Sequence record: PP813861.1
DNA: 64,000 nucleotides
Reading direction: 5' to 3' (one strand)
A model generated the notes under the pieces. It worked only from the letters and a program-made list of their open reading frames with translations, did no database searches and had not been told where the DNA came from. Each line of letters begins with the position of its first letter. Positions within the stretch are counted from its first letter, which is position 1. Of the stretch, positions 2,826 through 63,807 are shown piece by piece. The translations under genes and the position numbers were made by a program.

Positions 2826-4148
2826 TTACCTTACCTGGGAGGGATTATTTACTTGTTCTTGCGTAGGTCTTTGAATTGGACGCTGGTAAGCTTTTAATTC
2901 TAACTCGGTCACGAATACTAGTCGACCCATTACTCTGACTAAACCAGCAAGAGCATTACTAAAATCTGTTACAACGCGACTTACATTATTGATCATTAAT
3001 GTAATTGAATTAATGATATTTGAGATAGCAGGGATGCCATCAGGTGCATCAGGATCTTGAACTTTTGCTTGACGATTTCGCATATTAGATTGTTGTGCCC
3101 GAATCCTACCAGCTTGTTGACGATTAGTCTCGGCTAACTGCATTAACCTACCAAATTCAAAATCTAGTTTAGTTGCATAATCTTTTCTAGCATCTATACG
3201 TTTAGCCATTTCGCTTAATAATACTAACCGTCTTCCAATTGAACTCGTATCATTAACCTTAAAGGTATTGTTACCTTCAGGTGCATCCTTCATAGTAGGA
3301 ATAGTATAAAACTTAAAGGCAAAATCACGGACAGTATTTACTAAAAAATCCCAATCCCTGATCTCTTCAGTCTGTGTTTCAGTTGGCCCTGCGCCAAATA
3401 AAGTCTTATTACCTTGAACTGGCATACTACGATAAACTGTAGAACTTACTCTAAATCTATCATCTTTCTTAATAGGTACTGCACCCTTCATCCAGTTCTT
3501 AACATTAAACTTACTAAAGTCTTGTGCAGCTCTATCAGTCCATTTTTCATCAAATGATAATTTCCTAAGGATATCCGCTACAGATTGGATATACAAGAGT
3601 AGGGATTTATCATAGAAAGCTATCAAGTTGTTAACTTGCATGAGTATCGGATCAACTGTAGTCGGTTCGAATTTACCATCAATACTAAATCGTTTAGTAT
3701 TTTTAAATTTTAATTCTTGCTTAAATGGCTCATGCTTAATATTTTCAGCTCTTTCTAAAAGCATGTTTATTCGTTCAAGAGTACGTTGATTACCTTGTGT
3801 AATAACACGTGCATACTCTTTTAACTCATCTCGATGCTTTGCTTGGGATTTTTTCATTTCATCCCAGGTATTTCGTGCTGTCTTAGATAGGTCTTCTAAT
3901 GACACATTCTCAGTTTTTAGAATGTGTTCACTAACAACATCTTGGTTATCTGCATATTTTTGAAATAAGCCATCGGTATAGGTTTTAACTAAAATGTCTT
4001 TTTCAGTGCATTCTAATCTACTTTGAATATCTTCAATTGATGGCAATAATTCTTTTAGATATCCATCGCATGTAGCGATCATATCGACGGGGCTGTCCCC
4101 GTCGATTGATTCAAGTAAGACCGAATGACTAAGTGAATTATTAGTCAT
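2826..4148 (-). CDS. Virion head protein, gp92-like
   Basis: 440 aa, LLE/SLE motifs in the N-terminus; position in the head-gene cluster. Confidence 0.7.
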   Translation of the reverse strand: MTNNSLSHSVLLESIDGDSPVDMIATCDGYLKELLPSIEDIQSRLECTEKDILVKTYTDGLFQKYADNQDVVSEHILKTENVSLEDLSKTARNTWDEMKKSQAKHRDELKEYARVITQGNQRTLERINMLLERAENIKHEPFKQELKFKNTKRFSIDGKFEPTTVDPILMQVNNLIAFYDKSLLLYIQSVADILRKLSFDEKWTDRAAQDFSKFNVKNWMKGAVPIKKDDRFRVSSTVYRSMPVQGNKTLFGAGPTETQTEEIRDWDFLVNTVRDFAFKFYTIPTMKDAPEGNNTFKVNDTSSIGRRLVLLSEMAKRIDARKDYATKLDFEFGRLMQLAETNRQQAGRIRAQQSNMRNRQAKVQDPDAPDGIPAISNIINSITLMINNVSRVVTDFSNALAGLVRVMGRLVFVTELELKAYQRPIQRPTQEQVNNPSQVR

Positions 4149-30127: not shown

Positions 30128-31345
30128 CGTTATGTTCAGGTAAGTTCGCTACGCTTACCCCGCCTCTCGTATTGCAGGCAGCTGCATGTCGCCATGCAGA
30201 CCAGACTATATCTTGACCTTCACCCTAGGTGGTCAGGCCCCTCCCATTTCCACTCGCTTGAGTGTACTCCGCGTAACCGGATAGTCGTTGAACGTTCAAT
30301 CCATTTCTGGAAAGCTTCGCTGCTGATTGTCTCAATGAGATGTCCCAGCAATTAGAGAGGATTTACTTGACTCTTTCGAAATCAAGCAGGCAATTTGAAA
30401 ATATCCATCCATCCAGTTTTCCACCATTTTTTATCCGATGTTTAATAACTGAACGGTCTACATTGAAGTGTTTTGCGCAACTAGTTAATGACATAAATCC
30501 AATACATTTATTATTTTTGATAGCTTGTATGAATTGTCTTTTACTACCAGCTGTAGCTCTATGTACTCTATATTGTTCTTCAATATAAGAGTCTCTTACT
30601 ATAAATTTATAAGCTGGATATTTCTCTGCTGCGTACTTTGCAAGACCAGGAATTGATCGCCCATATGGACTATCGTAAAGTTGATAAGTTTTTAGAAAGA
30701 CTACAGTAGAGTATAATTCTTTAGCTGTATTATTCTGATCAATAACTATCACCATATATCGTGATGGTTTGACAAGTTCTGTTCGATGTTCATAAAACCA
30801 CGGGGTGGTTTCATTTGCATATTTGAACTCAAACTTACCTGCGATCAACTTACCAAACATTTTCGGTTTTAACATTGCATATGGGGTATCTTTTGAAAGA
30901 CCCATATATGCACATGCCTGGGCTATTGAATTAAATGCCATTACTTGTTTAGTATAGAAGCATCTAATATAACAAGCAATAGGATCACGTCTCAACCCAG
31001 TATTAACGGCATGGTAGTTATTACCCGAATAATCTGTCCATTCTAAATTCGTATGATAATTGTTGAGTGTATTACCATCTTTATGATTTACTACTGTAAA
31101 ATTATCAGGGGAATTATTTTTTATCCAAGCTAAAGCTACTGCTCGGTGGACAGGTAATGTTCTAGTTAGTGATCCACGAAAGACACTAACTACTTTGTAA
31201 CCATTCAGTAAAAATGGAGATAGGATTAAATCTTTTTCTATAGATTTAATTACTCCATTTTTAGTTACAGTATAGTTTTCATAACCTGGTATTACTCTAA
31301 ACTCTTCATTCATCTCATCTCCTAAAAGATGGATGGATATTAATT
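30128..31345 (-). mobile_element. Group I intron with homing endonuclease in the nvRNAP beta gene
   Basis: P AAUUGCUGG, Q AAUCAGCAG, R GUUCAACGACUA and S AAGAUAUAGUCUG elements. The 5' exon ends in U and the intron ends in G; splicing restores DFHGG|KGV. Confidence 0.92.
30363..31313 (-). CDS. Intron-encoded HNH homing endonuclease (NUMOD4-HNH-NUMOD1 type), gp72-like
   Basis: FRVIPGYENY (NUMOD4), VHRAVA...NHKDGNTLNN..NLEW (HNH), C-terminal HTH-like repeats. Confidence 0.9.
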   Translation of the reverse strand: MNEEFRVIPGYENYTVTKNGVIKSIEKDLILSPFLLNGYKVVSVFRGSLTRTLPVHRAVALAWIKNNSPDNFTVVNHKDGNTLNNYHTNLEWTDYSGNNYHAVNTGLRRDPIACYIRCFYTKQVMAFNSIAQACAYMGLSKDTPYAMLKPKMFGKLIAGKFEFKYANETTPWFYEHRTELVKPSRYMVIVIDQNNTAKELYSTVVFLKTYQLYDSPYGRSIPGLAKYAAEKYPAYKFIVRDSYIEEQYRVHRATAGSKRQFIQAIKNNKCIGFMSLTSCAKHFNVDRSVIKHRIKNGGKLDGWIFSNCLLDFERVK

Positions 31346-32688: not shown

Positions 32689-33063
32689 TTGGAATTTGTT
32701 ATGGCATTCACACTGTTAGCTAATCAGCCAGATTCAGGTGAATCTGTTTATTATGAACCAGGGTTCAGATTAATTATTGAGACTCATTTGAATATCTTAC
32801 GTAATGTCAGATCCACACGTATTCAAATTCCACCTGAACTGTATTACCAGTTCGAAGGAAACTTTTATGGATACATGGCAGAACGCCGTGTCAATCCTGA
32901 TATGTGGTGGATTCAAATGCGTGTTAATGGTTTAGTTAGCCCTTATGATTTTGGTAAAGTTCTAAGGGATCCTTCAGCTAATGATTACACCAGCTATTTA
33001 ATCATACCGAATAACGACATGATTCAACACCTCGTTAGCCTATATCAAACTAAAAAGTTTTAA
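32689..33063 (+). CDS. Small protein, candidate T4 gp53/LysM-like baseplate component (likely start MAFTLL)
   Basis: FYGY...DMWWIQMRVNGLVSPYDF resembles the gp53/gpX pattern Yg...lwW.i...N.i.dP.df (recalled, not searched). Confidence 0.45.
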   Translation: MEFVMAFTLLANQPDSGESVYYEPGFRLIIETHLNILRNVRSTRIQIPPELYYQFEGNFYGYMAERRVNPDMWWIQMRVNGLVSPYDFGKVLRDPSANDYTSYLIIPNNDMIQHLVSLYQTKKF

Positions 33064-33069
33064 AGCAAG

Positions 33070-33099
33070 CCAGGGGACCCTTAGGCCCCCTGGTTTATG
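33070..33099. terminator. Hairpin between convergent genes
   Basis: CCAGGGG-ACCCTTAGG-CCCCTGG then TTTATG. Confidence 0.65.
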
Positions 33100-33104
33100 C
33101 CGTA

Positions 33105-34496
33105 TTACAGTAGACGCCCCATCATTTGGTTTCCACCTAGATTCATCATCGCGGTGTTACCATTACCAGCTAGAGCGGGGTTTAGTGCTTGCGCAAATCC
33201 ACCATCCATCGGCATTTGATTGCCCATGAGTTGCATCATTTGCGGATGCATATTAGCCATCATTGGTTGCTGCGGCTGCATCATCCCAGGCATTGCAAAG
33301 TTATTGTTCATCATAACAGGTTGTTGCATCATTCCTGGTTGAGCAAATTGGTTTTTCTGCCCAGCATTTAGAAGATCTTGGATAGATGCTTTATTGCTAG
33401 TTTGAACTTGCTGTAAGGGACGTTGAGGTGCCTGAGTCATTGCTACTGCTTGACTCATGGATGGATTAACATTCACAGTTGTGCCTACTGGTACACGAGT
33501 AGAAGTAGTTTGTTCTTTAGCAGTATTACCCACTTTAACTACATTATCTTTTTTCTGGACAGGGATTTGGGCAACTGGGTTTACAGTTTCAGAAGCTTCT
33601 TCTTCTACTTCATTACTGACTCCTTCATTACCATCAAGAGAGGGGATCTCACGTTGCATCTTTGCAAAATCAGCAATCACCTTCTCATCAACTTTTGAAT
33701 AAGGTTGAATAGCATCATCGAAGATCAGGCGATACTTATCAATAACACTATTTAGTTGAGTAGTGATTTTGTTAAATGCCTGGATAAGACATACAAAATA
33801 AGGTGCTACCCGCTCAACTGTTCCTGCTGAATATTCAGTTGGTGAATCACCAAATGGTACAACTAGTTTAAATAGTTCGATTAGAACTGGCCGCTGTTTC
33901 TTAGGTACATTTACTCCAAGGATATCATCTTTAGAATAAAGATCCTCTACGATAGGGAACCGAATAACGCAGATACGGTTAACTGTCTTCCCATCAAATT
34001 TACCATTTGCTTTTAGATACACGCTTACAAAACGTGAACGTTTTTCAGCAGCTTTGACAACCTTATTAAACCACTCAATGGTATCTGGCTTAGCACCGGA
34101 TAGTTTCTTTAGGAAGTCTGAACATTCTGGTGGAATGTCTTTATGCAGAGTGGAGTCGGCAGCTACTTCTAAAATACGTGAAGTAAGATACTTCACAGTA
34201 AACATTAGATTAGCCTTAACTTGACGCTGCATATGCTGTAGTACTTGAGAAGTACCTAGCCGAGAGATCTTTTCAGATAGCGGGTGGAAGGCGATGTAAT
34301 CATCGCCTAGCCCTTTACGAAGCCAATCTTTAGTAGGTACCACTAGTCGCTTACCATCTACCTTTGCAGGTGCAGGTCGACCAAGTGGATCGAGAATACT
34401 GATCATATCCTCTTCACCTACTTTGTATCGGAAAGCAGGTAATACTTGATCACTATAGAACTTGGAAAGAGAAATCGTAGGCATTGTTATCACCAA
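33105..34496 (-). CDS. Conserved nucleus-locus protein, gp70-like, with a Q/M/N/P-rich tail
   Basis: 463 aa; low-complexity C-terminal ~110 aa; synteny next to picA. Confidence 0.75.
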   Translation of the reverse strand: MVITMPTISLSKFYSDQVLPAFRYKVGEEDMISILDPLGRPAPAKVDGKRLVVPTKDWLRKGLGDDYIAFHPLSEKISRLGTSQVLQHMQRQVKANLMFTVKYLTSRILEVAADSTLHKDIPPECSDFLKKLSGAKPDTIEWFNKVVKAAEKRSRFVSVYLKANGKFDGKTVNRICVIRFPIVEDLYSKDDILGVNVPKKQRPVLIELFKLVVPFGDSPTEYSAGTVERVAPYFVCLIQAFNKITTQLNSVIDKYRLIFDDAIQPYSKVDEKVIADFAKMQREIPSLDGNEGVSNEVEEEASETVNPVAQIPVQKKDNVVKVGNTAKEQTTSTRVPVGTTVNVNPSMSQAVAMTQAPQRPLQQVQTSNKASIQDLLNAGQKNQFAQPGMMQQPVMMNNNFAMPGMMQPQQPMMANMHPQMMQLMGNQMPMDGGFAQALNPALAGNGNTAMMNLGGNQMMGRLL

Positions 34497-44972: not shown

Positions 44973-45194
44973 TTATTTTGCTTTTAGCCATTCTTCTAAT
45001 GGCGGTAAATACTTCTCATGTGCCCAGTTAATAATTGTTTCTACAACAGGACCCTGTAATTCAAGGTTACCTGAGATTTCATGTGGTTCATCAATAGATA
45101 GAACCCATGTATGTGGAGCAATGCGTTCAGTTGCTTTAGTTAAATACACATCAGGCATTAACGTAAGATTCAATTGATCGCCGTCAAAATCAGC
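44973..45194 (-). CDS. Non-virion RNAP catalytic beta-prime subunit, exon 2 (gp56.1)
   Basis: Starts ADFDGDQLNLTLMP directly after the intron terminal G; the track ORF is truncated at 45173. Confidence 0.92.
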   Translation of the reverse strand, partial: ADFDGDQLNLTLMPDVYLTKATERIAPHTWVLSIDEPHEISGNLELQGPVVETIINWAHEKYLPPLEEWLKAK

Positions 45195-46570
45195 CGTTAT
45201 GTTCGGTATCAGTCGTTAATTGATACCCGCACCATTACGTGCAGCTCTAGCTCTCGCTAGAAGACCAGACTATATCTTCACCCTTCCTCTCGGAGTGGGG
45301 TGTCTCCCATTTCGGATCACTTGATCCTACATCCTATTTCTAGGACCGGCGCACCTGGTGCCGTAATAGTCGTTGAACGTTCCACATATTACAATTAAGT
45401 AATTTAGCGGCTTCGCTGCTGATTGTCTCTACCTAATCATTTTCAAACATTCGCACTTACTGTTTCCAGTTATGCTGTAGTTGATTAGTCTAATGAGAGT
45501 TTCCAGCAATTAGAGAGAACTCAACCCAATGATTACTCATTGGGGGAACTAGACTTGATTAACTTAATAAGGTATTTATCAAGCACCCCATTCTTTTCAA
45601 AGATTGCTCTTCGAATAGTATTCGGATGCTTAATACCGACATCTCTTGCAAAGTGTGGAATACTTGGATACACTTTGGTAGTGTTCAAGATGGTGTCAGT
45701 TACTTCAATTGGAGTGCCTTTTCCATTACTAGGTTTTCCAAATGAGGCTTCAATTTCTTTCTGAGTATATTTAGGGAAATCTTCAGGATTAGCAGTATAT
45801 GAGAATACCAGACCATCCATGATTTCCTTACTACCTCTAACTAGATGGTAATAGGCTTTATTACGTTTAGTACCTAGTGCAAGTTCCATTTCTGCTAAGT
45901 TATGAAACACATGTAATGTCTTAGTCTTATAGTCTAAAACATAAACTGTCTTGGTACTTTCACGATCAGCAATCTTAGTCTCACCGGTAATAAATTCAAA
46001 TGTGAATCTATTTCTATACGGCTTAGTCTTATGGTCACGTATAATAACCCAAACCGTATTTTTATTAACTCCTAATGCCCGAGCAAGTTCATTCATCGAG
46101 TAATAAGTAGTCTTTTCACCAGTGGTAACATCAGTTGCAATTACCCGTCTATTTTCTTTTCTTAATCCATTTTTGTAAGCATGCTCAATGTTTTCACCAC
46201 GAGTCATCCATTCCAAATTGGATGGTAAGTTATTATGTTTGTTGCCGTCTTTATGATTGACTTCATATGTTGGTCCAGGAGATGGACCATGGAATGCAGT
46301 ACAAATTAGAATATGCGCTCCCTTACTTTTTGATGTCTTTTCATCATTTTTTGCACCGATATTGAGATATGTCCCAATTGATGTTTTAGTAAGGAAGAAA
46401 TTACATATTCTATTTAACCGCTTATGACGAATTGTTCCTAGGTTACTAGCCTCATAAGCTGAGTATCCAGGAATATCTCGCCATTCAATTTTAAATGAAG
46501 CCGGATCAAAGACGGACACTACTCCGTTTTGTTCCATTGTCTTTTACCTTATTTGGTTATTCAATTGTCC
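45195..46570 (-). mobile_element. Group I intron with homing endonuclease splitting the NADFDGD catalytic motif
   Basis: P, Q, R and S elements at 45503-45512, 45410-45429, 45366-45382 and 45262-45278; exon U and terminal G; splicing gives KAPN|ADFDGD. Confidence 0.93.
45533..46537 (-). CDS. Intron-encoded HNH homing endonuclease, gp56-like
   Basis: WRDIPGYSAYEASNLG (NUMOD4), NHKDGNKHNN..NLEW (HNH) and three NUMOD1-like HTH repeats. Confidence 0.9.
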   Translation of the reverse strand: MEQNGVVSVFDPASFKIEWRDIPGYSAYEASNLGTIRHKRLNRICNFFLTKTSIGTYLNIGAKNDEKTSKSKGAHILICTAFHGPSPGPTYEVNHKDGNKHNNLPSNLEWMTRGENIEHAYKNGLRKENRRVIATDVTTGEKTTYYSMNELARALGVNKNTVWVIIRDHKTKPYRNRFTFEFITGETKIADRESTKTVYVLDYKTKTLHVFHNLAEMELALGTKRNKAYYHLVRGSKEIMDGLVFSYTANPEDFPKYTQKEIEASFGKPSNGKGTPIEVTDTILNTTKVYPSIPHFARDVGIKHPNTIRRAIFEKNGVLDKYLIKLIKSSSPNE

Positions 46571-47815
46571 ATTAGGCGCTTTAAGGCATAAAACTGACAT
46601 GCTGATAGAATTATCATTAATGTCATCTTTTACTTTAGTAATAAAGAATTGCTGCGTAGATCCACGTTGAAGCGTTGGATTTCGGTGAAAAGTACAACCC
46701 ATCCCTTTATAAGGGGCTGCTTCTGCAATTAGCTCTTTAAATAGATCTGCAATGATTTGGTTATATTGAAGTACATTCTCATATACAAATGAGAATGCTT
46801 CACGAGTTGTCATGTTAAACTTTGCTTTTAGTTTATTGGTTAGATGATACTTTAATAATTGACAACCTACCCCCCAAGGGATATGTAGTTCATCATAATC
46901 ATGCGGGTCACTAATAGAAGTGATTACTGCACGTGCCGTAGCGTTGAGACGAGCACCAAACATGTGACGCCGAGCAAGACCAGGCTTTTGAGCAATTCGT
47001 GATTTTGCGTAGATCTCGTAGAACTGGCCATATAGTCTTAGTCCTCGCATAGTCCTATTCTGAGCTTTAATTGGACTAAGTGGTACAGATGATGCATCAA
47101 TACTAGCGAAGGTTAAGGTAGCATCAATTGCTGCTTCAATTGGTTTATCTAAGTAAGTACCAGATGTGGTTGATTCTGCTACGAAACAGAGTTTAGAAGG
47201 AACTGGTAAATATTTAGGGAATAACTTATCTTTATTCTGAGCAACGAATTGAGCGAATTCGGATTTATTATTAGAGATAATATTTGCATCTAGTAGGAAT
47301 TGGAAGATCTCATTGAAATTATCAATGAAGTGATTTAATCCTCTTTCAAATCCTCGATGCAGTAGCCTATCTACTTTCCTGCGTGTTTCCTTAGAACCAA
47401 TAGATTCTACATCGTATCGATAAGAAGTATCAGTTAGATATGCTAAGAAATCGAATTCTTTAGTTACTAGATATCCGGTTAGCATAATGATTAAACGTGG
47501 GTTAATTAGGCTACGTACATGTTTTGGTGTACGAACCCACATTGATGGTTCGATAGGGCGGCTAGAAGTATTGACAACTGGAGTATTACAAATATCACAG
47601 ATTACTCCGAGTTTATGTGCGTCTTCGATTGCTCGACAATCACAGCTTACACTACTTTCAATTGCTTCTGAATCTTGGAAATGAGAATAGAAATGTCTAT
47701 CAAATTCTTCTTTCTCATCTGAGTTACTCGTATTGTAATCATTGGCATAAATTCGTTTACCCGTAAATTGATCATGAACTTCATTATGATCAACAACTTT
47801 GGCATAAAGACCCAT
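46571..47815 (-). CDS. Non-virion RNAP beta-prime N-terminal subunit, exon 1 (gp55)
   Basis: Zn finger CDC...CDIC, KPGLARRHMFGAR, ARAVI, RNPTL...KAPN. Confidence 0.92.
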
Positions 47816-47840
47816 ACCAAACTCCTATTTATCGATTAAC

Positions 47841-47883
47841 AAAAAAAGGAGATATAAGCGGCCCCCGAAGGAGCCGCTATATC
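47841..47883 (-). terminator. Intrinsic terminator closing the chmA plus ncRNA unit
   Basis: GATATAGCGGCTCC-TTCG-GGGGCCGCTTATATC followed by a T7 tract on the minus strand. Confidence 0.85.
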
Positions 47884-47885
47884 AG

Positions 47886-48209
47886 TTTTTACAATGGACC
47901 ACCAACGGAGCCTGGCCCGAACCTAGCGTCATCTACAAAGCTTAACCTCCGCTCTTCTCTGTAGCACATTGGCACTAGTCTCATTTACCATCCATTGTAG
48001 TTTTTGATCACACGTCACCTTTTGAGTAACTCCTTTCGGTTAAGTGATCTATCATCCTCGTGTAGTGATAGGTCGACCTAGACTAAGTCCACTAGTCGAT
48101 TACTTCACGGAACCTACTCCTAACCATTATCACCGAAGTGAACCAGGGTCGCAGTATTAGAATCGGGATGTTACTTATTTAACATCCCTATCTACCGAGG
48201 TATTTCCTA
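47886..48209 (-). ncRNA. Candidate structured non-coding RNA (or structured 3' UTR) downstream of chmA
   Basis: At least 8 helices, one GAAA-capped stem and a 7-bp pseudoknot; G-U wobbles favour the minus strand; no credible ORF. Confidence 0.65.
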
Positions 48210-50090
48210 TTAGTACCAGGTACCCGGTGCATTATAGGAAGGAGCGCCGTAAGTTTGACCCATGCTGCCAGCCATGCCAACTTGTGCACTACCAGAAACA
48301 GCCATGTTACCCATACCGGTGTAACCAGCGAAGCGCTGTTGACCGAAGTTGGTAATTAGGTTTTCCATGGTTACAGTTACACCAGCTGCTGCTGCTGCGG
48401 CATCCATTGCGGTGATGAATTTCGGGTTAAAGGTTAGACGACGAGCACGACCAGTATAGGTAACGTTACCTAGGTACATCTTGTCGAAGCCTTTACTGTT
48501 ATTCATACGACGCACAATGTGGTCATTACCTACCTGAGTAGCATACCAGGTCTTCCACTCTTGGTCATTACCTTCAGACATGTTCATGGCACCTAGAACG
48601 TCGAGATCACGACGGTCGCTTAGTTCACCATGCTCATCAGTGTAGTGACCGAGGTCTACTTCATGATGGTTGTCAAAGATAATCGGACCAGCTTCAGCTA
48701 GATTATAGAACTGACGGAAATCAGTGCCGTATAGGTTAGTTAGAGCTTGGAAGATCAGACTAACTGCACGAGCTTGGTTTACGCCACCAGCTGCATCTAG
48801 GACGACTTGCTCAATAGCTGAGTTGTCTCCCATTGGATCGACATCGATCTGGAATGCAGGGTTCTGGTTAACCATCTTGTTCATTAGCATTACGAAGTTG
48901 CTGTCGTCTGCCATGAATGCTTCGGTGCGAGTTTCAATCGCTTTACCTAGCTCTGAGTAATAACCAAGTGCACCAATATCACGCATCTTACTAGTAGCGA
49001 TCTTCGGCATTAGAGTACGAGCCCATGCCTGAGATGCAGTTGCACGATACGCGTTACCAAGCGCGAACAGCCACATTTCTAGAGTCCATGCTTGGATCCA
49101 GGACGCCTTACGAACGTCAGTAATAACGATGTAAGGAGTGAACTGCGGAGGTAGAACTGCACCAGGTAGAGTTACGCCAAACATGCCTTGTTGCTGGCCA
49201 GTGGTCGGAGTCCAATGTAGATCTACGAATAGACTAACTTGGTTTAGCTGGCTATCGGTATCATAGAACTCGTTCTCAGGTACGTTGGTTTTCTTACCAC
49301 GGCTAGTGGAGATGACCAGGTCAGAACGGATCGGATTACCACAGCTATCTTTAACCGGAATACCATTGTAGTCTAGATTGCAGGTAAGCTGTTCGTTTTC
49401 TGCTTTGATGTGGGTCGCAATAGAGAACGGAGTCTCATTGTTACGACGCGCAATAGCATCTTCACAGATATTAACGGATTCAACTAGTAGGTTCTTAACA
49501 GCTAGTTCATCTTTGAAGTCGAAGTCAGCATACACTGCACGTGGACCGGCAGATAGTACTTCTAGACCAGGGATGTTGTAACGGTTCCGTAGGAACTCGC
49601 CGATCTTGCTCCAGTATTGAGCAGTGAATACATCACGCGGTAGTACCTTCTCTTCAATGATGTCATCAGTTAGACCATTGTTGATTTTGTGGGTACGGGG
49701 ACGGATGCGAGTACCAGGTAGGTTATCGAGTACTAGAGTACGAACGAATGCCTTCATGGAACCATTGATATCTTTAGCTAGTTTAACAATGAGTAGACCA
49801 GCCATACCCACTTGTTGTGCATCGCGATCGAAACGATGGATATCGAAGTCATCAGGTAGGTCCTGATGGCGGATTGCTTCTTCTTTTACTTTAGTGAATA
49901 CTTGTAGGGCATCTGCTGAACGAGCATCAGAGCCATCTAGCCGACCAGAGCGACGCATTAGATGGTTAATGCCAGTAGTGGACCCAGGTGCGCCAGCCGG
50001 ACGTTGAGCTTGACGTTGTGCAGTGGGTTGCGGAGCCGGAGCGGTAGCTTGAGTTTGAACGGTGCCGATTTCGTTTTCGTTAACAGCCAT
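48210..50090 (-). CDS. chmA: Chimallin, the major phage nuclear shell protein (gp54)
   Basis: 626 aa with a disordered Q/A/P N-terminus and ChmA-like C-terminal tail; highly biased codon use; directly upstream of gp55. Confidence 0.92.
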
Positions 50091-50162
50091 TTTAAATACC
50101 TTTACGATTATGGTTTCTTGATCAAGAAGAACCTAAGTACTTAGTATACTAGATTCAATTTA

Positions 50163-50186
50163 GTAATATAAATCTCAAATTTTTTT
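50163..50186 (-). promoter_or_regulatory. Early promoter of chmA
   Basis: AAAAAAATTTGAGATTTATATTAC about 70 nt upstream of the ATG. Confidence 0.8.
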
Positions 50187-50401
50187 CATTACAACATAGA
50201 CGCTATAATCTGCTATCAGCAGATCGTAACGAACACTATGTTCACTACATATTATTACAATCTGAGTATTATTTATTTTTCATCTTACAATTTCCATATC
50301 TTCTTTTTTGAGTTTATGGGTATAAAGTTTGAATCCAGAAACTAATTTACGTCAGTCCTGTATTAAATAATAACTATCAGTATTTTTATAAAATGCAGTT
50401 A

Positions 50402-50767
50402 TCATTTACTTCGCATATACTTACGAACTGTTCCAAAAAGAGAATGATACAGTTTGTATAGTTTACTAACTGGATCAACTTTATTATTATCAGTTGTATC
50501 AAATTTAGCAATAAATGGTGAATGTGCCGAAGCAGATGTTTCATTTACTTTAACTACACTACCAAATCGATATGCGACTAATACCTTTATTAATTCCTCA
50601 TGGAGTTTAGTAGCAGTTGCTAATGGATTGGGATCATTAGGATCTATCTTAACCCTACGCTCGACATTGAAAAAGTTTACTACAATTTCTTTGCTAGTCA
50701 TGTATACAGTAAGATCTTTGTTATTACCTAAATATAGTGGCGGATCTTCAACATTATTTTTAGCCAT
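50402..50767 (-). CDS. Hypothetical protein, gp53-like
   Basis: 121 aa, AGGAA SD, early promoter upstream. Confidence 0.7.
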   Translation of the reverse strand: MAKNNVEDPPLYLGNNKDLTVYMTSKEIVVNFFNVERRVKIDPNDPNPLATATKLHEELIKVLVAYRFGSVVKVNETSASAHSPFIAKFDTTDNNKVDPVSKLYKLYHSLFGTVRKYMRSK

Positions 50768-50808
50768 TGTATATTCCTATTTGTAATTACTACTGTTGTT
50801 ACCAAACT

Positions 50809-50833
50809 ATGATATAGATCTCAATTAATTTTT
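50809..50833 (-). promoter_or_regulatory. Early-type promoter
   Basis: AAAAATTAATTGAGATCTATATCAT. Confidence 0.7.
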
Positions 50834-50848
50834 AATCGGATAATAACC

Positions 50849-51940
50849 ATGTATAATTTATTTAAGAATGCTCCGTCACGTAAATTGGGGCAGGTGGTTG
50901 ATCCTAACATCCATTATATCCGACGAATCTACGCTGAGCAAATTAGGGACGTTAAAAGTTATTATAGACGGGCACCGAAGTATGTTGAATCTAAAAACAT
51001 ATTAGCACAAATGATTCGACATTTTAACGTAGAGTTACTAAGTGATGATGCTACTTTTATAAAGAACGTGGACGATCGTTCACGTGCTATTATTCGTTCA
51101 TTTGGTATTACATCATCTTTAAATAAAGGTAAGGTTCATGTAGGTGGTGTTACACTTGGTCCTCAAACTGAAGAAGTTCTAGTATCCACATCAGAGAGCT
51201 TTGATCTAAAAGATCTAAATAAAACATGGTATAAACTTTCCCCTGTTACGTATCTGTATCATACACGTACTGATACTAATTTACCTATCATGAACAATAC
51301 CACACAGGGTAGAGGCTATGGTGTAACTCTAGTAAATATACCAATGCTTCTTGTGATGTACCGTTACTGGTATCGATGGCAAGTTGAGAAGAATCCTGAT
51401 GAAGTAGAAGACACTTATAGGTTTATAGGATCATTTGTATTGCCAAATATGGTTGACTCTTATTTAGATATTTCTTTCTTTAATAGGTTAGCAAGGAATG
51501 CTTTAGATATTAAAAATCCAACATTCCCTATACCGCATCCATTTTACATCACTGATATGAATCCACGTATTGATAAACTATGTACAACTATCAATAGAGA
51601 ATCCATATTAAAAGGTGTAGACATGGAAGGTTTATCATGGATAACACCAGCTATCGTACAATCTAATTTGTTCGATATGATGCGGCTCCCACGAGAACCT
51701 ATTAACAGGAATAATGAATGGGCTTATGTATTGGCTCGCACACCCTTCATTAAGTATCTTGTAGGGCAGCTTTTAAAGAATACTGGTTATGATCAATCTT
51801 CTGTTAACACTGTATTAATTGATCTTATAGAAGCATCTAATGATCAAGCATTTAAGCAACAAGCAAATAGTGAGTTTGTAAAAGCTCAACAGGCACAAGT
51901 TGATTGGATGATAGATGCACTTAAAAGAAAAGAAATGTGA
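50849..51940 (+). CDS. Conserved virion-associated protein, gp52-like
   Basis: 363 aa; synteny between the polymerase and chmA. Confidence 0.7.
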   Translation: MYNLFKNAPSRKLGQVVDPNIHYIRRIYAEQIRDVKSYYRRAPKYVESKNILAQMIRHFNVELLSDDATFIKNVDDRSRAIIRSFGITSSLNKGKVHVGGVTLGPQTEEVLVSTSESFDLKDLNKTWYKLSPVTYLYHTRTDTNLPIMNNTTQGRGYGVTLVNIPMLLVMYRYWYRWQVEKNPDEVEDTYRFIGSFVLPNMVDSYLDISFFNRLARNALDIKNPTFPIPHPFYITDMNPRIDKLCTTINRESILKGVDMEGLSWITPAIVQSNLFDMMRLPREPINRNNEWAYVLARTPFIKYLVGQLLKNTGYDQSSVNTVLIDLIEASNDQAFKQQANSEFVKAQQAQVDWMIDALKRKEM

Positions 51941-62823: not shown

Positions 62824-63807
62824 TTAATCGAATACAAGACCACTACTAGTTGCTTGGTCATCCACATCTAGAGTAGACTGACGCTTACGCATATTAGCTT
62901 TGGCTCGATTCATCATTTCACGACGTTCTTCTAATCGCTTACGAATATCTTCAATAGATAGGCCATTGATCACAAAATGCATTTGATCGAAATCATATTT
63001 TTCAGGATCAGCATAACCAGTAGTACGAGTTAGAACTGTACTAATTGATACATCGCGATCAGGATCAGTGTATAGTGAAGCAATAGAAATTGGATCCAAA
63101 ATAGCCTGAGCTTCTTGACGATCGAAACACACGTGTAATTGGACAGTCTGTACAGGTACATCATGGTGCTTATGGAAGTGTGCCCAGTTAGTGATATCCA
63201 TTAGATCAAGACTTTGGTGTTCTTGATTAAATAGAATTACTAGTGCATTTAGTACTTCAAGAATGTTTTGGTTCACCATTGATTGCGGTACACCTTCAAC
63301 ATTCTCATGATAGTTAATAATCATCGGAACTTTACTAACAGAGGAAACCCCTTCAAACGTCTTAAGGCTACCACTACTATTTCGAAGACTAATATCACTG
63401 TCGTAAGATCCAATGACCACACTTACAACTACTTCACCTTGTTGTTGTAGATGACTGACAAGGGAAGGACCAATAGTTGAACCAGAAGCACCACCCATTG
63501 AATACACTACAATGTTAGCATCCCCTGCTGGGAAATGATGGGCAATGGCAGGAATATGTGCAGAGATTAGTTCTGCGGCTGCCTTACGATCTTTACCCAT
63601 ACCGATAGCACGTTTACGTGCAGTCTGGTCAGCTAGCTTAGTATCCGCTTCAATAATGATCGTATTATCGTCAGTATTGTGTTTGTGTTTATTCTGTACA
63701 CTGGTATCAATGTAGCAAACATCCTCATGATAACCATGGAATAGTTCACCAATACGGAAACCAGCACCACCACAAAAGTAAATTCGAGTTTTTACTTTAG
63801 ACATCAT
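62824..63807 (-). CDS. phuZ: Phage tubulin PhuZ (gp39)
   Basis: FCGGAG, tubulin signature SMGGASGS, IDTS, and the PhuZ C-terminal tail ending SGLVFD. Confidence 0.95.
   Translation of the reverse strand: MMSKVKTRIYFCGGAGFRIGELFHGYHEDVCYIDTSVQNKHKHNTDDNTIIIEADTKLADQTARKRAIGMGKDRKAAAELISAHIPAIAHHFPAGDANIVVYSMGGASGSTIGPSLVSHLQQQGEVVVSVVIGSYDSDISLRNSSGSLKTFEGVSSVSKVPMIINYHENVEGVPQSMVNQNILEVLNALVILFNQEHQSLDLMDITNWAHFHKHHDVPVQTVQLHVCFDRQEAQAILDPISIASLYTDPDRDVSISTVLTRTTGYADPEKYDFDQMHFVINGLSIEDIRKRLEERREMMNRAKANMRKRQSTLDVDDQATSSGLVFD

Follow-up and report, generated by a model that had tools for sequence, protein, structure and literature searches.

What lies behind the chimallin gene, chmA, in phages related to phiKZ, where one intergenic spacer stands out by its length? 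We examined this locus in a 64,000-nucleotide (nt) window of DNA that matches Pseudomonas phage vB_PaeM_FBPa36 (PP813861.1) with 100% identity at equal coordinates and is ~98% identical to phiKZ, the model nucleus-forming phage, in which chmA is the best-studied and most strongly expressed early gene. The spacer between chmA and gp55, two genes whose synteny is kept in 18 chimallivirus loci, spans 394 nt (47816-48209) and is the longest of the 59 intergenic gaps in 50 kb of the record (14-64 kb), in agreement with a preliminary description of the window that had called it far longer than most and had read ~320 nt of it as RNA. The spacer is a structured, non-coding, minus-strand RNA of several domains that is modular, horizontally exchanged, and under selection for both its structure and the sequence of its loops. 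Its absence from most chimalliviruses, the exchange of its domains between phage genera, and a conservation far above that of chmA are features that the preliminary description did not contain.

The case for a conserved fold is comparative. In an alignment (A3) of 15 colinear spacer sequences from phiKZ-like phages and Pawinskivirus, evaluated with a model of 114 base pairs, standard pairs occupied 98.2% of cells. Both sides had changed in eight pairs (31 cells), compared with 0-2 pairs in six controls with slid partners, and the covariation score of 0.103 (slid controls, 0.007-0.037) was attained by 0 of 500 shuffles, so that compensatory substitutions exceed those of the controls, as in a conserved structured RNA. 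Twelve pairs pass through G-U intermediates, which on the plus strand would give C-A, and the RNA is therefore assigned to the minus strand; fold energies favour the same strand, and the preliminary description's point that some wobble pairs work on the minus strand alone is thereby borne out. Most of the both-side changes separate the two genera and may for that reason be single events. Independent events are an A-U to G-C change in helix P4b that is found only in W10-2 and another in the junction hairpin that is found only in HPP-Temi, and helix 12 occurs as G-U, G-C, and U-A variants inside the phiKZ group (e.g., 124.01). The loops of the RNA are invariant in the alignment. Compensatory changes and invariant loops together indicate that selection acts on the RNA itself. 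Single-sequence z-scores of the domains are modest (-1.8 to -2.6), too modest on their own, and the claim of a fold therefore rests on the comparative evidence.

The RNA folds as three domains, and a strong intrinsic terminator comes after them (Table 1). The central three-way junction, the most widely shared module, is built in the order closing helix GAUCAC/GUGAUC, joiner UUAA, mini-hairpin CC-GAAA-GG, hairpin GUUACU/GGUGAC, and joiner GU. Its closing helix covaries to ACCAC/GUGGU in PhiPA3 and AGUUA/UAACU in L033, a Logan metagenome contig, and its hairpin to GUUGC/GCAAC in HPP-Temi and CAUGC/GCAUG in L033, where both helices are wholly replaced around the conserved UUUACCGAAAGGA. A long-range GAUCAC/GUGGUC pairing offered by RNAalifold was set aside for this local junction, whose covariation is seen in both PhiPA3 and L033. 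The four-way junction is likewise shared by PhiPA3, with an isostructural P3 that ends in a GAAA tip and an expanded P4 whose base is a helix of 8 base pairs (bp; GUGGUAGC/GCUAUCAC). The terminator, a G+C-rich hairpin with a U run on the transcribed strand, was overlooked by a simple terminator scanner, its U run beginning 3 nt past a bulged stem. The tandem UAAUAG stops of chmA are also present in phiKZ, PhiPA3, L033, L018, and L021.

Table 1. Features of the chmA-gp55 locus, in order along the minus strand (window coordinates)
Feature	Position	Strand	Basis or remark
chmA (PHIKZ054, chimallin, 626 aa)	48210..50090	-	Annotation; PF25677; 99% match to phiKZ-group ChmA
Tandem stops UAA UAG ending chmA	48207..48212	-	Sequence; RNA begins directly after
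5′ domain, four-way junction	48056..48200	-	Minimum free energy (MFE) fold and alifold; both-side changes
P1, closing helix of 5′ domain	48200-48196/48060-48056	-	Both-side change, U-A to C-G
P2	48194-48191/48161-48158	-	Both-side change, A-U to U-A
P2a, 9-bp hairpin GGGAUGUUA / UAACAUCCC	48188-48180/48173-48165	-	Three covarying versions: phiKZ group, Pawinskivirus, PhiPA3
P3 arm, tip UCAC-UUCG-GUGA (UUCG tetraloop)	48156-48115	-	
P4 arm, containing UCGACU/GGUCGA	48108-48065	-	U-A to C-G; P4b A-U to G-C in W10-2
Central three-way junction	48006..48049	-	MFE = centroid; most widely shared module
A-rich linker	48005-48000	-	Between three-way junction and domain X
3′ domain X, 110 nt	47890..47999	-	Helices 11-13; both-side changes in outer helix and helix 12
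Outer helix of X	47999-47990/47899-47890	-	A-U to G-C in Pawinskivirus
Helix 12 of X	47982-47972/47929-47919	-	Both-side changes
Hairpin 13 of X	47966-47957/47940-47930	-	Invariant 16-nt loop AAGAGCGGAGGUUAAG
Candidate pseudoknot arm 1, AGCGGAG	47947..47953	-	Loop of hairpin 13; complementary to 47910-47904; invariant
Candidate pseudoknot arm 2, CUCCGUU	47904..47910	-	Alternatively loop and stem of nested hairpin 47916-47912/47905-47901
Intrinsic terminator GAUAUAGCGGCUCC-UUCG-GGGGCCGCUUAUAUC, then UCC + U7	47841..47883	-	14-bp hairpin, -22.4 kcal/mol, z = -5.8
gp55 Shine-Dalgarno AGGAG	47826-47822	-	gp55's own
gp55 (non-virion RNA polymerase (nvRNAP) beta subunit, exon 1)	46544..47815	-	Annotation; downstream of terminator

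The complementary segments listed in the preliminary description all lie where it had placed them, and most of its helices survive comparison. In the 3′ domain, covariation backs its outer helix (47890-47898/47991-47999, through an A-U to G-C change in Pawinskivirus), its inner helix (47978-47973/47928-47923), and its hairpin (47964-47957/47940-47933). The 9-bp hairpin P2a covaries in all three of its versions, UUA/UAA changing to CAG/CUG in Pawinskivirus and reading ACG/CGU in PhiPA3; the GAUCAC/GUGAUC helix around CC-GAAA-GG is fully covarying in PhiPA3 and L033; and the UCGAC/GUCGA helix has an A-U to G-C change in W10-2. A proposed CUAUCA/UGAUAG helix fared differently: it breaks in W10-2 and HPP-Temi, contains a U-U in Pawinskivirus, and excludes P1 and P4, both of which covary cleanly; it is probably wrong.

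The preliminary description also held that a 7-bp pseudoknot joins AGCGGAG to CUCCGUU. The complementarity is there, with -8.8 kcal/mol for the 7 bp alone and -12.2 kcal/mol for the best loop-segment duplex, which adds two further pairs, but the existence of the pseudoknot does not follow from it: an equally good duplex arises in 3.8% of shuffles, and covariation is silent because both arms are invariant in the 15 sequences. The copy of domain X in PhiPA3 has only a 5-bp analogue (GUGGG/CCCAC), which by eye is expected by chance. We retain the pseudoknot as a plausible candidate in the sequence.

Several lines of evidence agree that the spacer is non-coding. Substitutions between the genera fall evenly over the codon positions (16/20/17, p = 0.78), each of the six frames holds 4-12 stops, insertions and deletions measure 1-3 nt, and a 31-codon open reading frame (ORF) of the window loses its start codon in other haplotypes. 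Because the RNA is placed between the chmA stops and the gene's own terminator, on the same strand, it is a functional 3′ untranslated region (UTR) or a 3′-UTR-derived non-coding RNA (ncRNA), much as the preliminary description had proposed.

The RNA matches no known family, whether of riboswitches, ribozymes, tmRNA, RNase P, 6S RNA, introns, or sRNAs. Against Rfam 15, searched up to E = 10, the best scores of the spacer were 12-18 bits at family thresholds of 40-100 (E at least 1.7), consistent with the preliminary description, which had recognised no motif; the spacers of PhiPA3 and phiHQ likewise found no match. The same library recovered two group I introns elsewhere in the window (79-85 bits), and we therefore consider the search sensitive. 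ARAGORN predicted no tRNA or tmRNA gene in positions 45000-51000 of the window or in L002, L005, L033, and L048, and no paralogue of the RNA was found elsewhere in the window with a covariance model of domain X (R1, which detects a single copy there) or a motif regex. Motifs of the RsmA, Hfq, or CrcZ type and Shine-Dalgarno-like loops (AAGGAG, GGAGGU), sought by eye, were not enriched or not conserved in PhiPA3. Mimicry of a host sequence was rejected as well, an invariant 20-mer of the RNA having no exact match in 185,579 bacterial genomes, and a replication origin with an R-loop primer was considered unlikely, there being no turn of GC skew at 48 kb and a cumulative skew that falls throughout the window.

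How widely is the RNA distributed? It is present in ~50 phiKZ-like genomes (95-100% identity) and, at ~85% identity, in Pawinskivirus (PA1C, HPP-Temi, PS119XW, BRkr, HHBS36_1); it is partial in phiHQ and patchy in PhiPA3. L033, whose ChmA is 55% identical to that of phiKZ, keeps the three-way junction in a 205-nt spacer in which model R1 detects no domain X. Searches with nhmmer, R1, and the motif regex found the RNA solely in phiKZ-like phages, Pawinskivirus, PhiPA3, and L033, and among the sampled phages with a known host all carriers are P. aeruginosa phages. The RNA was missing from 17 of 18 chimallivirus loci in IMG/VR, the exception being PhiPA3, and from four lineages recovered from Logan and ENA. 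A ChmA-guided scan of IMG/VR covered 20 loci and found it only in PA7 and PhiPA3, and DNA-pattern scans of IMG/VR and metagenomes returned chance matches only. Four lineages whose ChmA is 59-64% identical to that of PA1C have spacers of 77-98 nt from which the RNA is absent. Nearly all 18 IMG/VR loci retain the order chmA-terminator-gp55, usually with a spacer of 12-150 nt; across the Chimalliviridae, the RNA is thus not a core feature.

Its domains are largely autonomous and behave as modules. The PhiPA3 spacer (HQ630627.1 41455-41969, 515 nt) carries an extra core of domain X (helices 12-13) at the tip of P4 (L002 2759-2831, minus sense; R1 E = 5e-4, with compensatory changes). This copy has an outer helix to itself, AUUGCA/UGCAAU, and a hairpin behind it, while a diverged domain occupies the usual 3′ position. 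In phiHQ, ChmA is identical to that of PA1C, yet an unrelated element, which we call module B, stands in place of the 5′ domain.

At the nucleotide level the spacer forms an island of conservation, being 85.5% identical between the window and PA1C compared with 66% for chmA (49.5% for its amino acids) and 68% for gp55. When the window was aligned by blastn with 50 kb of syntenic PA1C, the 719 fully aligned 200-nt segments had a median identity of 0.665, and the 13 highest (0.825-0.87) all fell in the spacer, with 0.79 the best value elsewhere. Shorter stretches above 80% identity in a 45-kb comparison with PA1C occur outside the spacer only at 33054-33109 (57 nt, 87.7%) and 63747-63804 (58 nt, 82.8%).

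The tree of the RNA conflicts with the tree of ChmA. The ChmA of PA1C shares 65% of its amino acids with that of PhiPA3 and 48% with that of phiKZ, whereas its RNA is near that of phiKZ and only patchily alignable with that of PhiPA3. Within Phikzvirus, the core of domain X (A3 columns 236-299; window 47919-47982; 64 nt) exists in two haplotypes, and that of T2P, SL2, PA7, HUST_1, and W10-2 is 95-98% identical to Pawinskivirus compared with 86-88% to FBPa36 and phiKZ. Since the 64-nt core of that haplotype is nearer to PA1C than to FBPa36, parts of the RNA must have passed from one genus to another.

What might such an RNA do? We propose, tentatively and at somewhat less than even probability, that it is a co-transcribed 3′ UTR of chmA that acts as a protein-binding platform through which the message is stabilised or directed. 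The RNA would be transcribed with chmA, the dominant early transcript, and end at the terminator, and its folded domains and invariant loops would present a sequence-specific platform to one or more phage RNA-binding proteins. The resulting ribonucleoprotein would protect the 3′ end of the message or govern its handling, and might outlive the message as a stable 3′-UTR fragment. Each domain probably binds its partner independently, since the domains can be swapped, duplicated, and lost.

The only candidate partner with data is ChmC. In PhiPA3, enhanced crosslinking and immunoprecipitation (eCLIP) of ChmC gave RNA peaks between chmA (gp53) and gp54, and the authors noted the read coverage and suggested 'small regulatory RNAs' but did not delimit the RNA or describe its structure, conservation, or family (Enustun et al., NAR 2024, PMC11077065). 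We find that the peak region is the orthologous spacer. The experiment thus shows that infected cells contain the RNA at 45 min and that ChmC can be crosslinked to it, and the peaks in the orthologous spacer lend some experimental footing to one proposal of the preliminary description, that the RNA scaffolds ChmC. Its suggestions of mRNA localisation, mRNA export, and self-cleavage gained no support in the present analysis. The PhiPA3 region resembles the one described here in its four-way junction, three-way junction, X-type domains, and terminator, and differs in its length of 515 nt and the additional domain X in P4.

Four observations weigh against a protein-binding 3′ UTR that serves the chmA message. 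ChmC binds a broad range of phage mRNAs, and a binding motif was not identified (PMC11077065), so that the eCLIP peak may reflect abundance only. The phiKZ studies by differential RNA sequencing (dRNA-seq), Grad-seq, and ONT-cappable-seq name other phage ncRNAs, the spacer RNA not among them, for which reason a separate stable species may not accumulate. Most chimalliviruses have spacers of 12-150 nt that lack the RNA, which is therefore not required for chmA expression in general. Finally, the high identity of the spacer may partly reflect recent exchange between genera and not constraint alone.

The RNA could instead act in trans, as a host-specific ncRNA for which the chmA 3′ UTR is merely the best-expressed early site; we regard this as somewhat unlikely but as a serious contender. 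Processing, e.g., within the A-rich linker (48005-48000), would set it free, and it would then act on a P. aeruginosa factor as a decoy or sponge; a defence protein, an RNase, and an RNA chaperone are examples of such factors. The distribution fits this idea, in that the sampled carriers with a known host (phiKZ-like phages, Pawinskivirus, and PhiPA3) all infect P. aeruginosa and the lineages of intermediate ChmA lack the RNA. The conflict between the RNA and ChmA phylogenies, together with a 64-nt piece that is 98% identical between T2P and PA1C, fits an exchangeable accessory module, and the site itself is occupied by unrelated structured modules in other lineages. Module B is also found beside a tRNA gene in Ralstonia phage RP13 and, since that copy adjoins a tRNA gene, works away from chmA. 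The RNA of the window, hereafter module A, is in contrast confined to the chmA 3′ UTR in all ~60 carrier genomes. No complementary or mimicked sequence was detected in the Rfam scan or the search with the 20-mer, no target is known, and a processed species has not been reported in the literature.

A more specific form of this idea would make the chmA 3′ UTR an 'expression slot' for horizontally traded structured RNAs, occupied by module A here, module B in phiHQ and Psa21, and a module C in 201phi2-1-like phages. Module A, made abundantly in the opening minutes of infection, ahead of nucleus formation, would then be an early trans-acting counter-defence or takeover RNA directed against a P. 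aeruginosa factor. We consider this form unlikely.

A role in cis, in which a put-like or attenuator-like element controls termination or read-through into the operon of gp55 and the nvRNAP and so sets the ratio of ChmA to nvRNAP, is improbable. The geometry would suit it, as domain X ends 6 nt ahead of the terminator stem and, by eye, GAGCGG in the loop of hairpin 13 can pair with CCGCUU in the 3′ arm of the terminator. In the phiKZ transcriptome literature, chmA is described as a member of a six-gene operon, so that read-through past the terminator must occur, and no promoter of its own has been reported for gp107, the gp55 counterpart in 201phi2-1. The control is nevertheless weakened by the phages that lack the RNA and keep the same chmA-terminator-gp55 layout; no mutually exclusive pairing of terminator and antiterminator is conserved in PhiPA3; and 320 nt in three domains far exceeds the needs of an attenuator.

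We hold it highly improbable that the spacer is a selfish or neutral mobile RNA-coding module at a recombination hotspot that brings the phage no benefit. Domain swaps, duplication, and mosaicism across genera are in keeping with mobility, and homing endonucleases and group I introns lie nearby, but the spacer itself contains no transposase, endonuclease, or intron core, and the RNA's compensatory changes and invariant loops point to selection on it. The nearby group I intron and its HNH endonuclease were rejected as having caused the island by co-conversion, because identity is just 68% in gp55 exon 1, which separates the spacer from the nearest intron, and because PA1C does not have that intron. 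That the RNA is catalytic, for example a new self-cleaving ribozyme, is a very remote prospect: the multi-domain fold, the invariant junction and loop nucleotides, and the possible pseudoknot would be in character, yet no Rfam ribozyme matches even at E = 10, and nothing suggests a conserved cleavage site. That the spacer encodes one or more small proteins, as its ORFs of 31-38 codons and the entry 'hypothetical protein (x2)' in pharokka-style records might suggest, can be practically dismissed given the lost start codon, small indels, missing codon phase, and many stops described above.

The spacer RNA belongs to a known kind of element, the structured phage ncRNA embedded in a 3′ UTR, although the family itself is undescribed. 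Its closest counterparts, 3′UTR_PHIKZ298 of phiKZ (Gerovac 2021, PMC8545117; Putzeys 2024, PMC10914365) and ncRNA1/2 of PAK_P3, are likewise structured, lie 3′ of a gene, share its terminator, and have no reported promoter of their own; they measure ~100-210 nt, form two stem-loops, and were found by expression, whereas the spacer RNA has ~320 nt in three multi-helix domains and is known here from sequence. ROOL and GOLLD (Rfam) are similarly large, multi-domain, phage-borne orphan RNAs with covarying helices, but they are free-standing near tRNAs, and the spacer RNA, which matches neither in sequence or structure in the Rfam scans, is smaller and embedded in an mRNA 3′ UTR. With the group I introns of the window (RF00028, 79-85 bits) it shares structure, gene cluster, and horizontal mobility, but it has no RF00028 match and no endonuclease gene, and it interrupts no gene. 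What is unusual in the spacer RNA is its size, its modular build of three domains, a degree of conservation that the essential genes on either side do not reach, and its exchange across genus boundaries.

The RNA behind chmA is nameless, absent from Rfam, and not the subject of any functional study, and the one-sentence eCLIP remark in PhiPA3 is its only trace in the literature. It outconserves ChmA, is traded between genera, and is limited to one host species among sampled phages with a known host, which points to strong selection for a specific role. Binding to ChmC, or control over what becomes of the chmA message, would make it a handle on mRNA management outside and around the nucleus, and activity in trans would make it an early phage RNA weapon of a new kind.

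Other observations concern the surroundings of the spacer. The G+C content of chmA is 47% (window 48001-50000) compared with ~36% for the remaining window, and that of the spacer RNA is also raised (43-46%), with an RNA strand rich in G. A similar chmA terminator design is near-universal in the chimallivirus loci L014-L033, where a G+C hairpin with a UUCG loop is followed by a short YCUCY spacer, U6-7, and then G; tandem UAAUAG stops are frequent after chmA in the same loci.

The two group I introns found by Rfam (45245-45570 and 30182-30408, both minus strand; 85.5 and 79.1 bits) are each paired with an annotated HNH homing endonuclease gene (45533-46537 and 30363-31313, respectively). The nvRNAP beta gene seems to be interrupted by the first of them: in the window, gp55 has 423 amino acids compared with ~480-510 in PA1C, PhiPA3, and most chimalliviruses, and its exon 2 may be the 61-codon ORF at 44973-45158. 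HNH_3 genes directly follow the gp55 homologue in L033 and L037.

Module B, a conserved RNA-like element, has three carriers only in the phage collection, at ~2911-3214 (minus sense) of L005 (phiHQ), 2365-2799 of L048 (Psa21), and ~2500-2700 of L049 (RP13). It fills the chmA-gp55 spacer of the P. syringae phage Psa21, under an annotated plus-strand ORF, and in RP13 the adjoining gene is tRNA-Leu. One of its helices covaries (CCCAG/CUGGG, CUCGA/UCGAG, CCAGA/UCUGG) around an invariant UGUGUUAUAAAACUUACGGUGAUGUAA-like core, and the phiHQ copy had no match in Rfam. A third element occupies the first ~200 nt past the chmA stop in 201phi2-1-like phages (L016, L018, L019, L021, and L022, the last being 201phi2-1) and consists of a hairpin with the conserved loop ACCUAAAUACUGGMUAAA and the covarying stems CCACAUCU/AGAUGUGG and GACACC/GGUGUUC; L019 and L022 additionally carry a GGGAUC-GAAA-GGUCCC hairpin.

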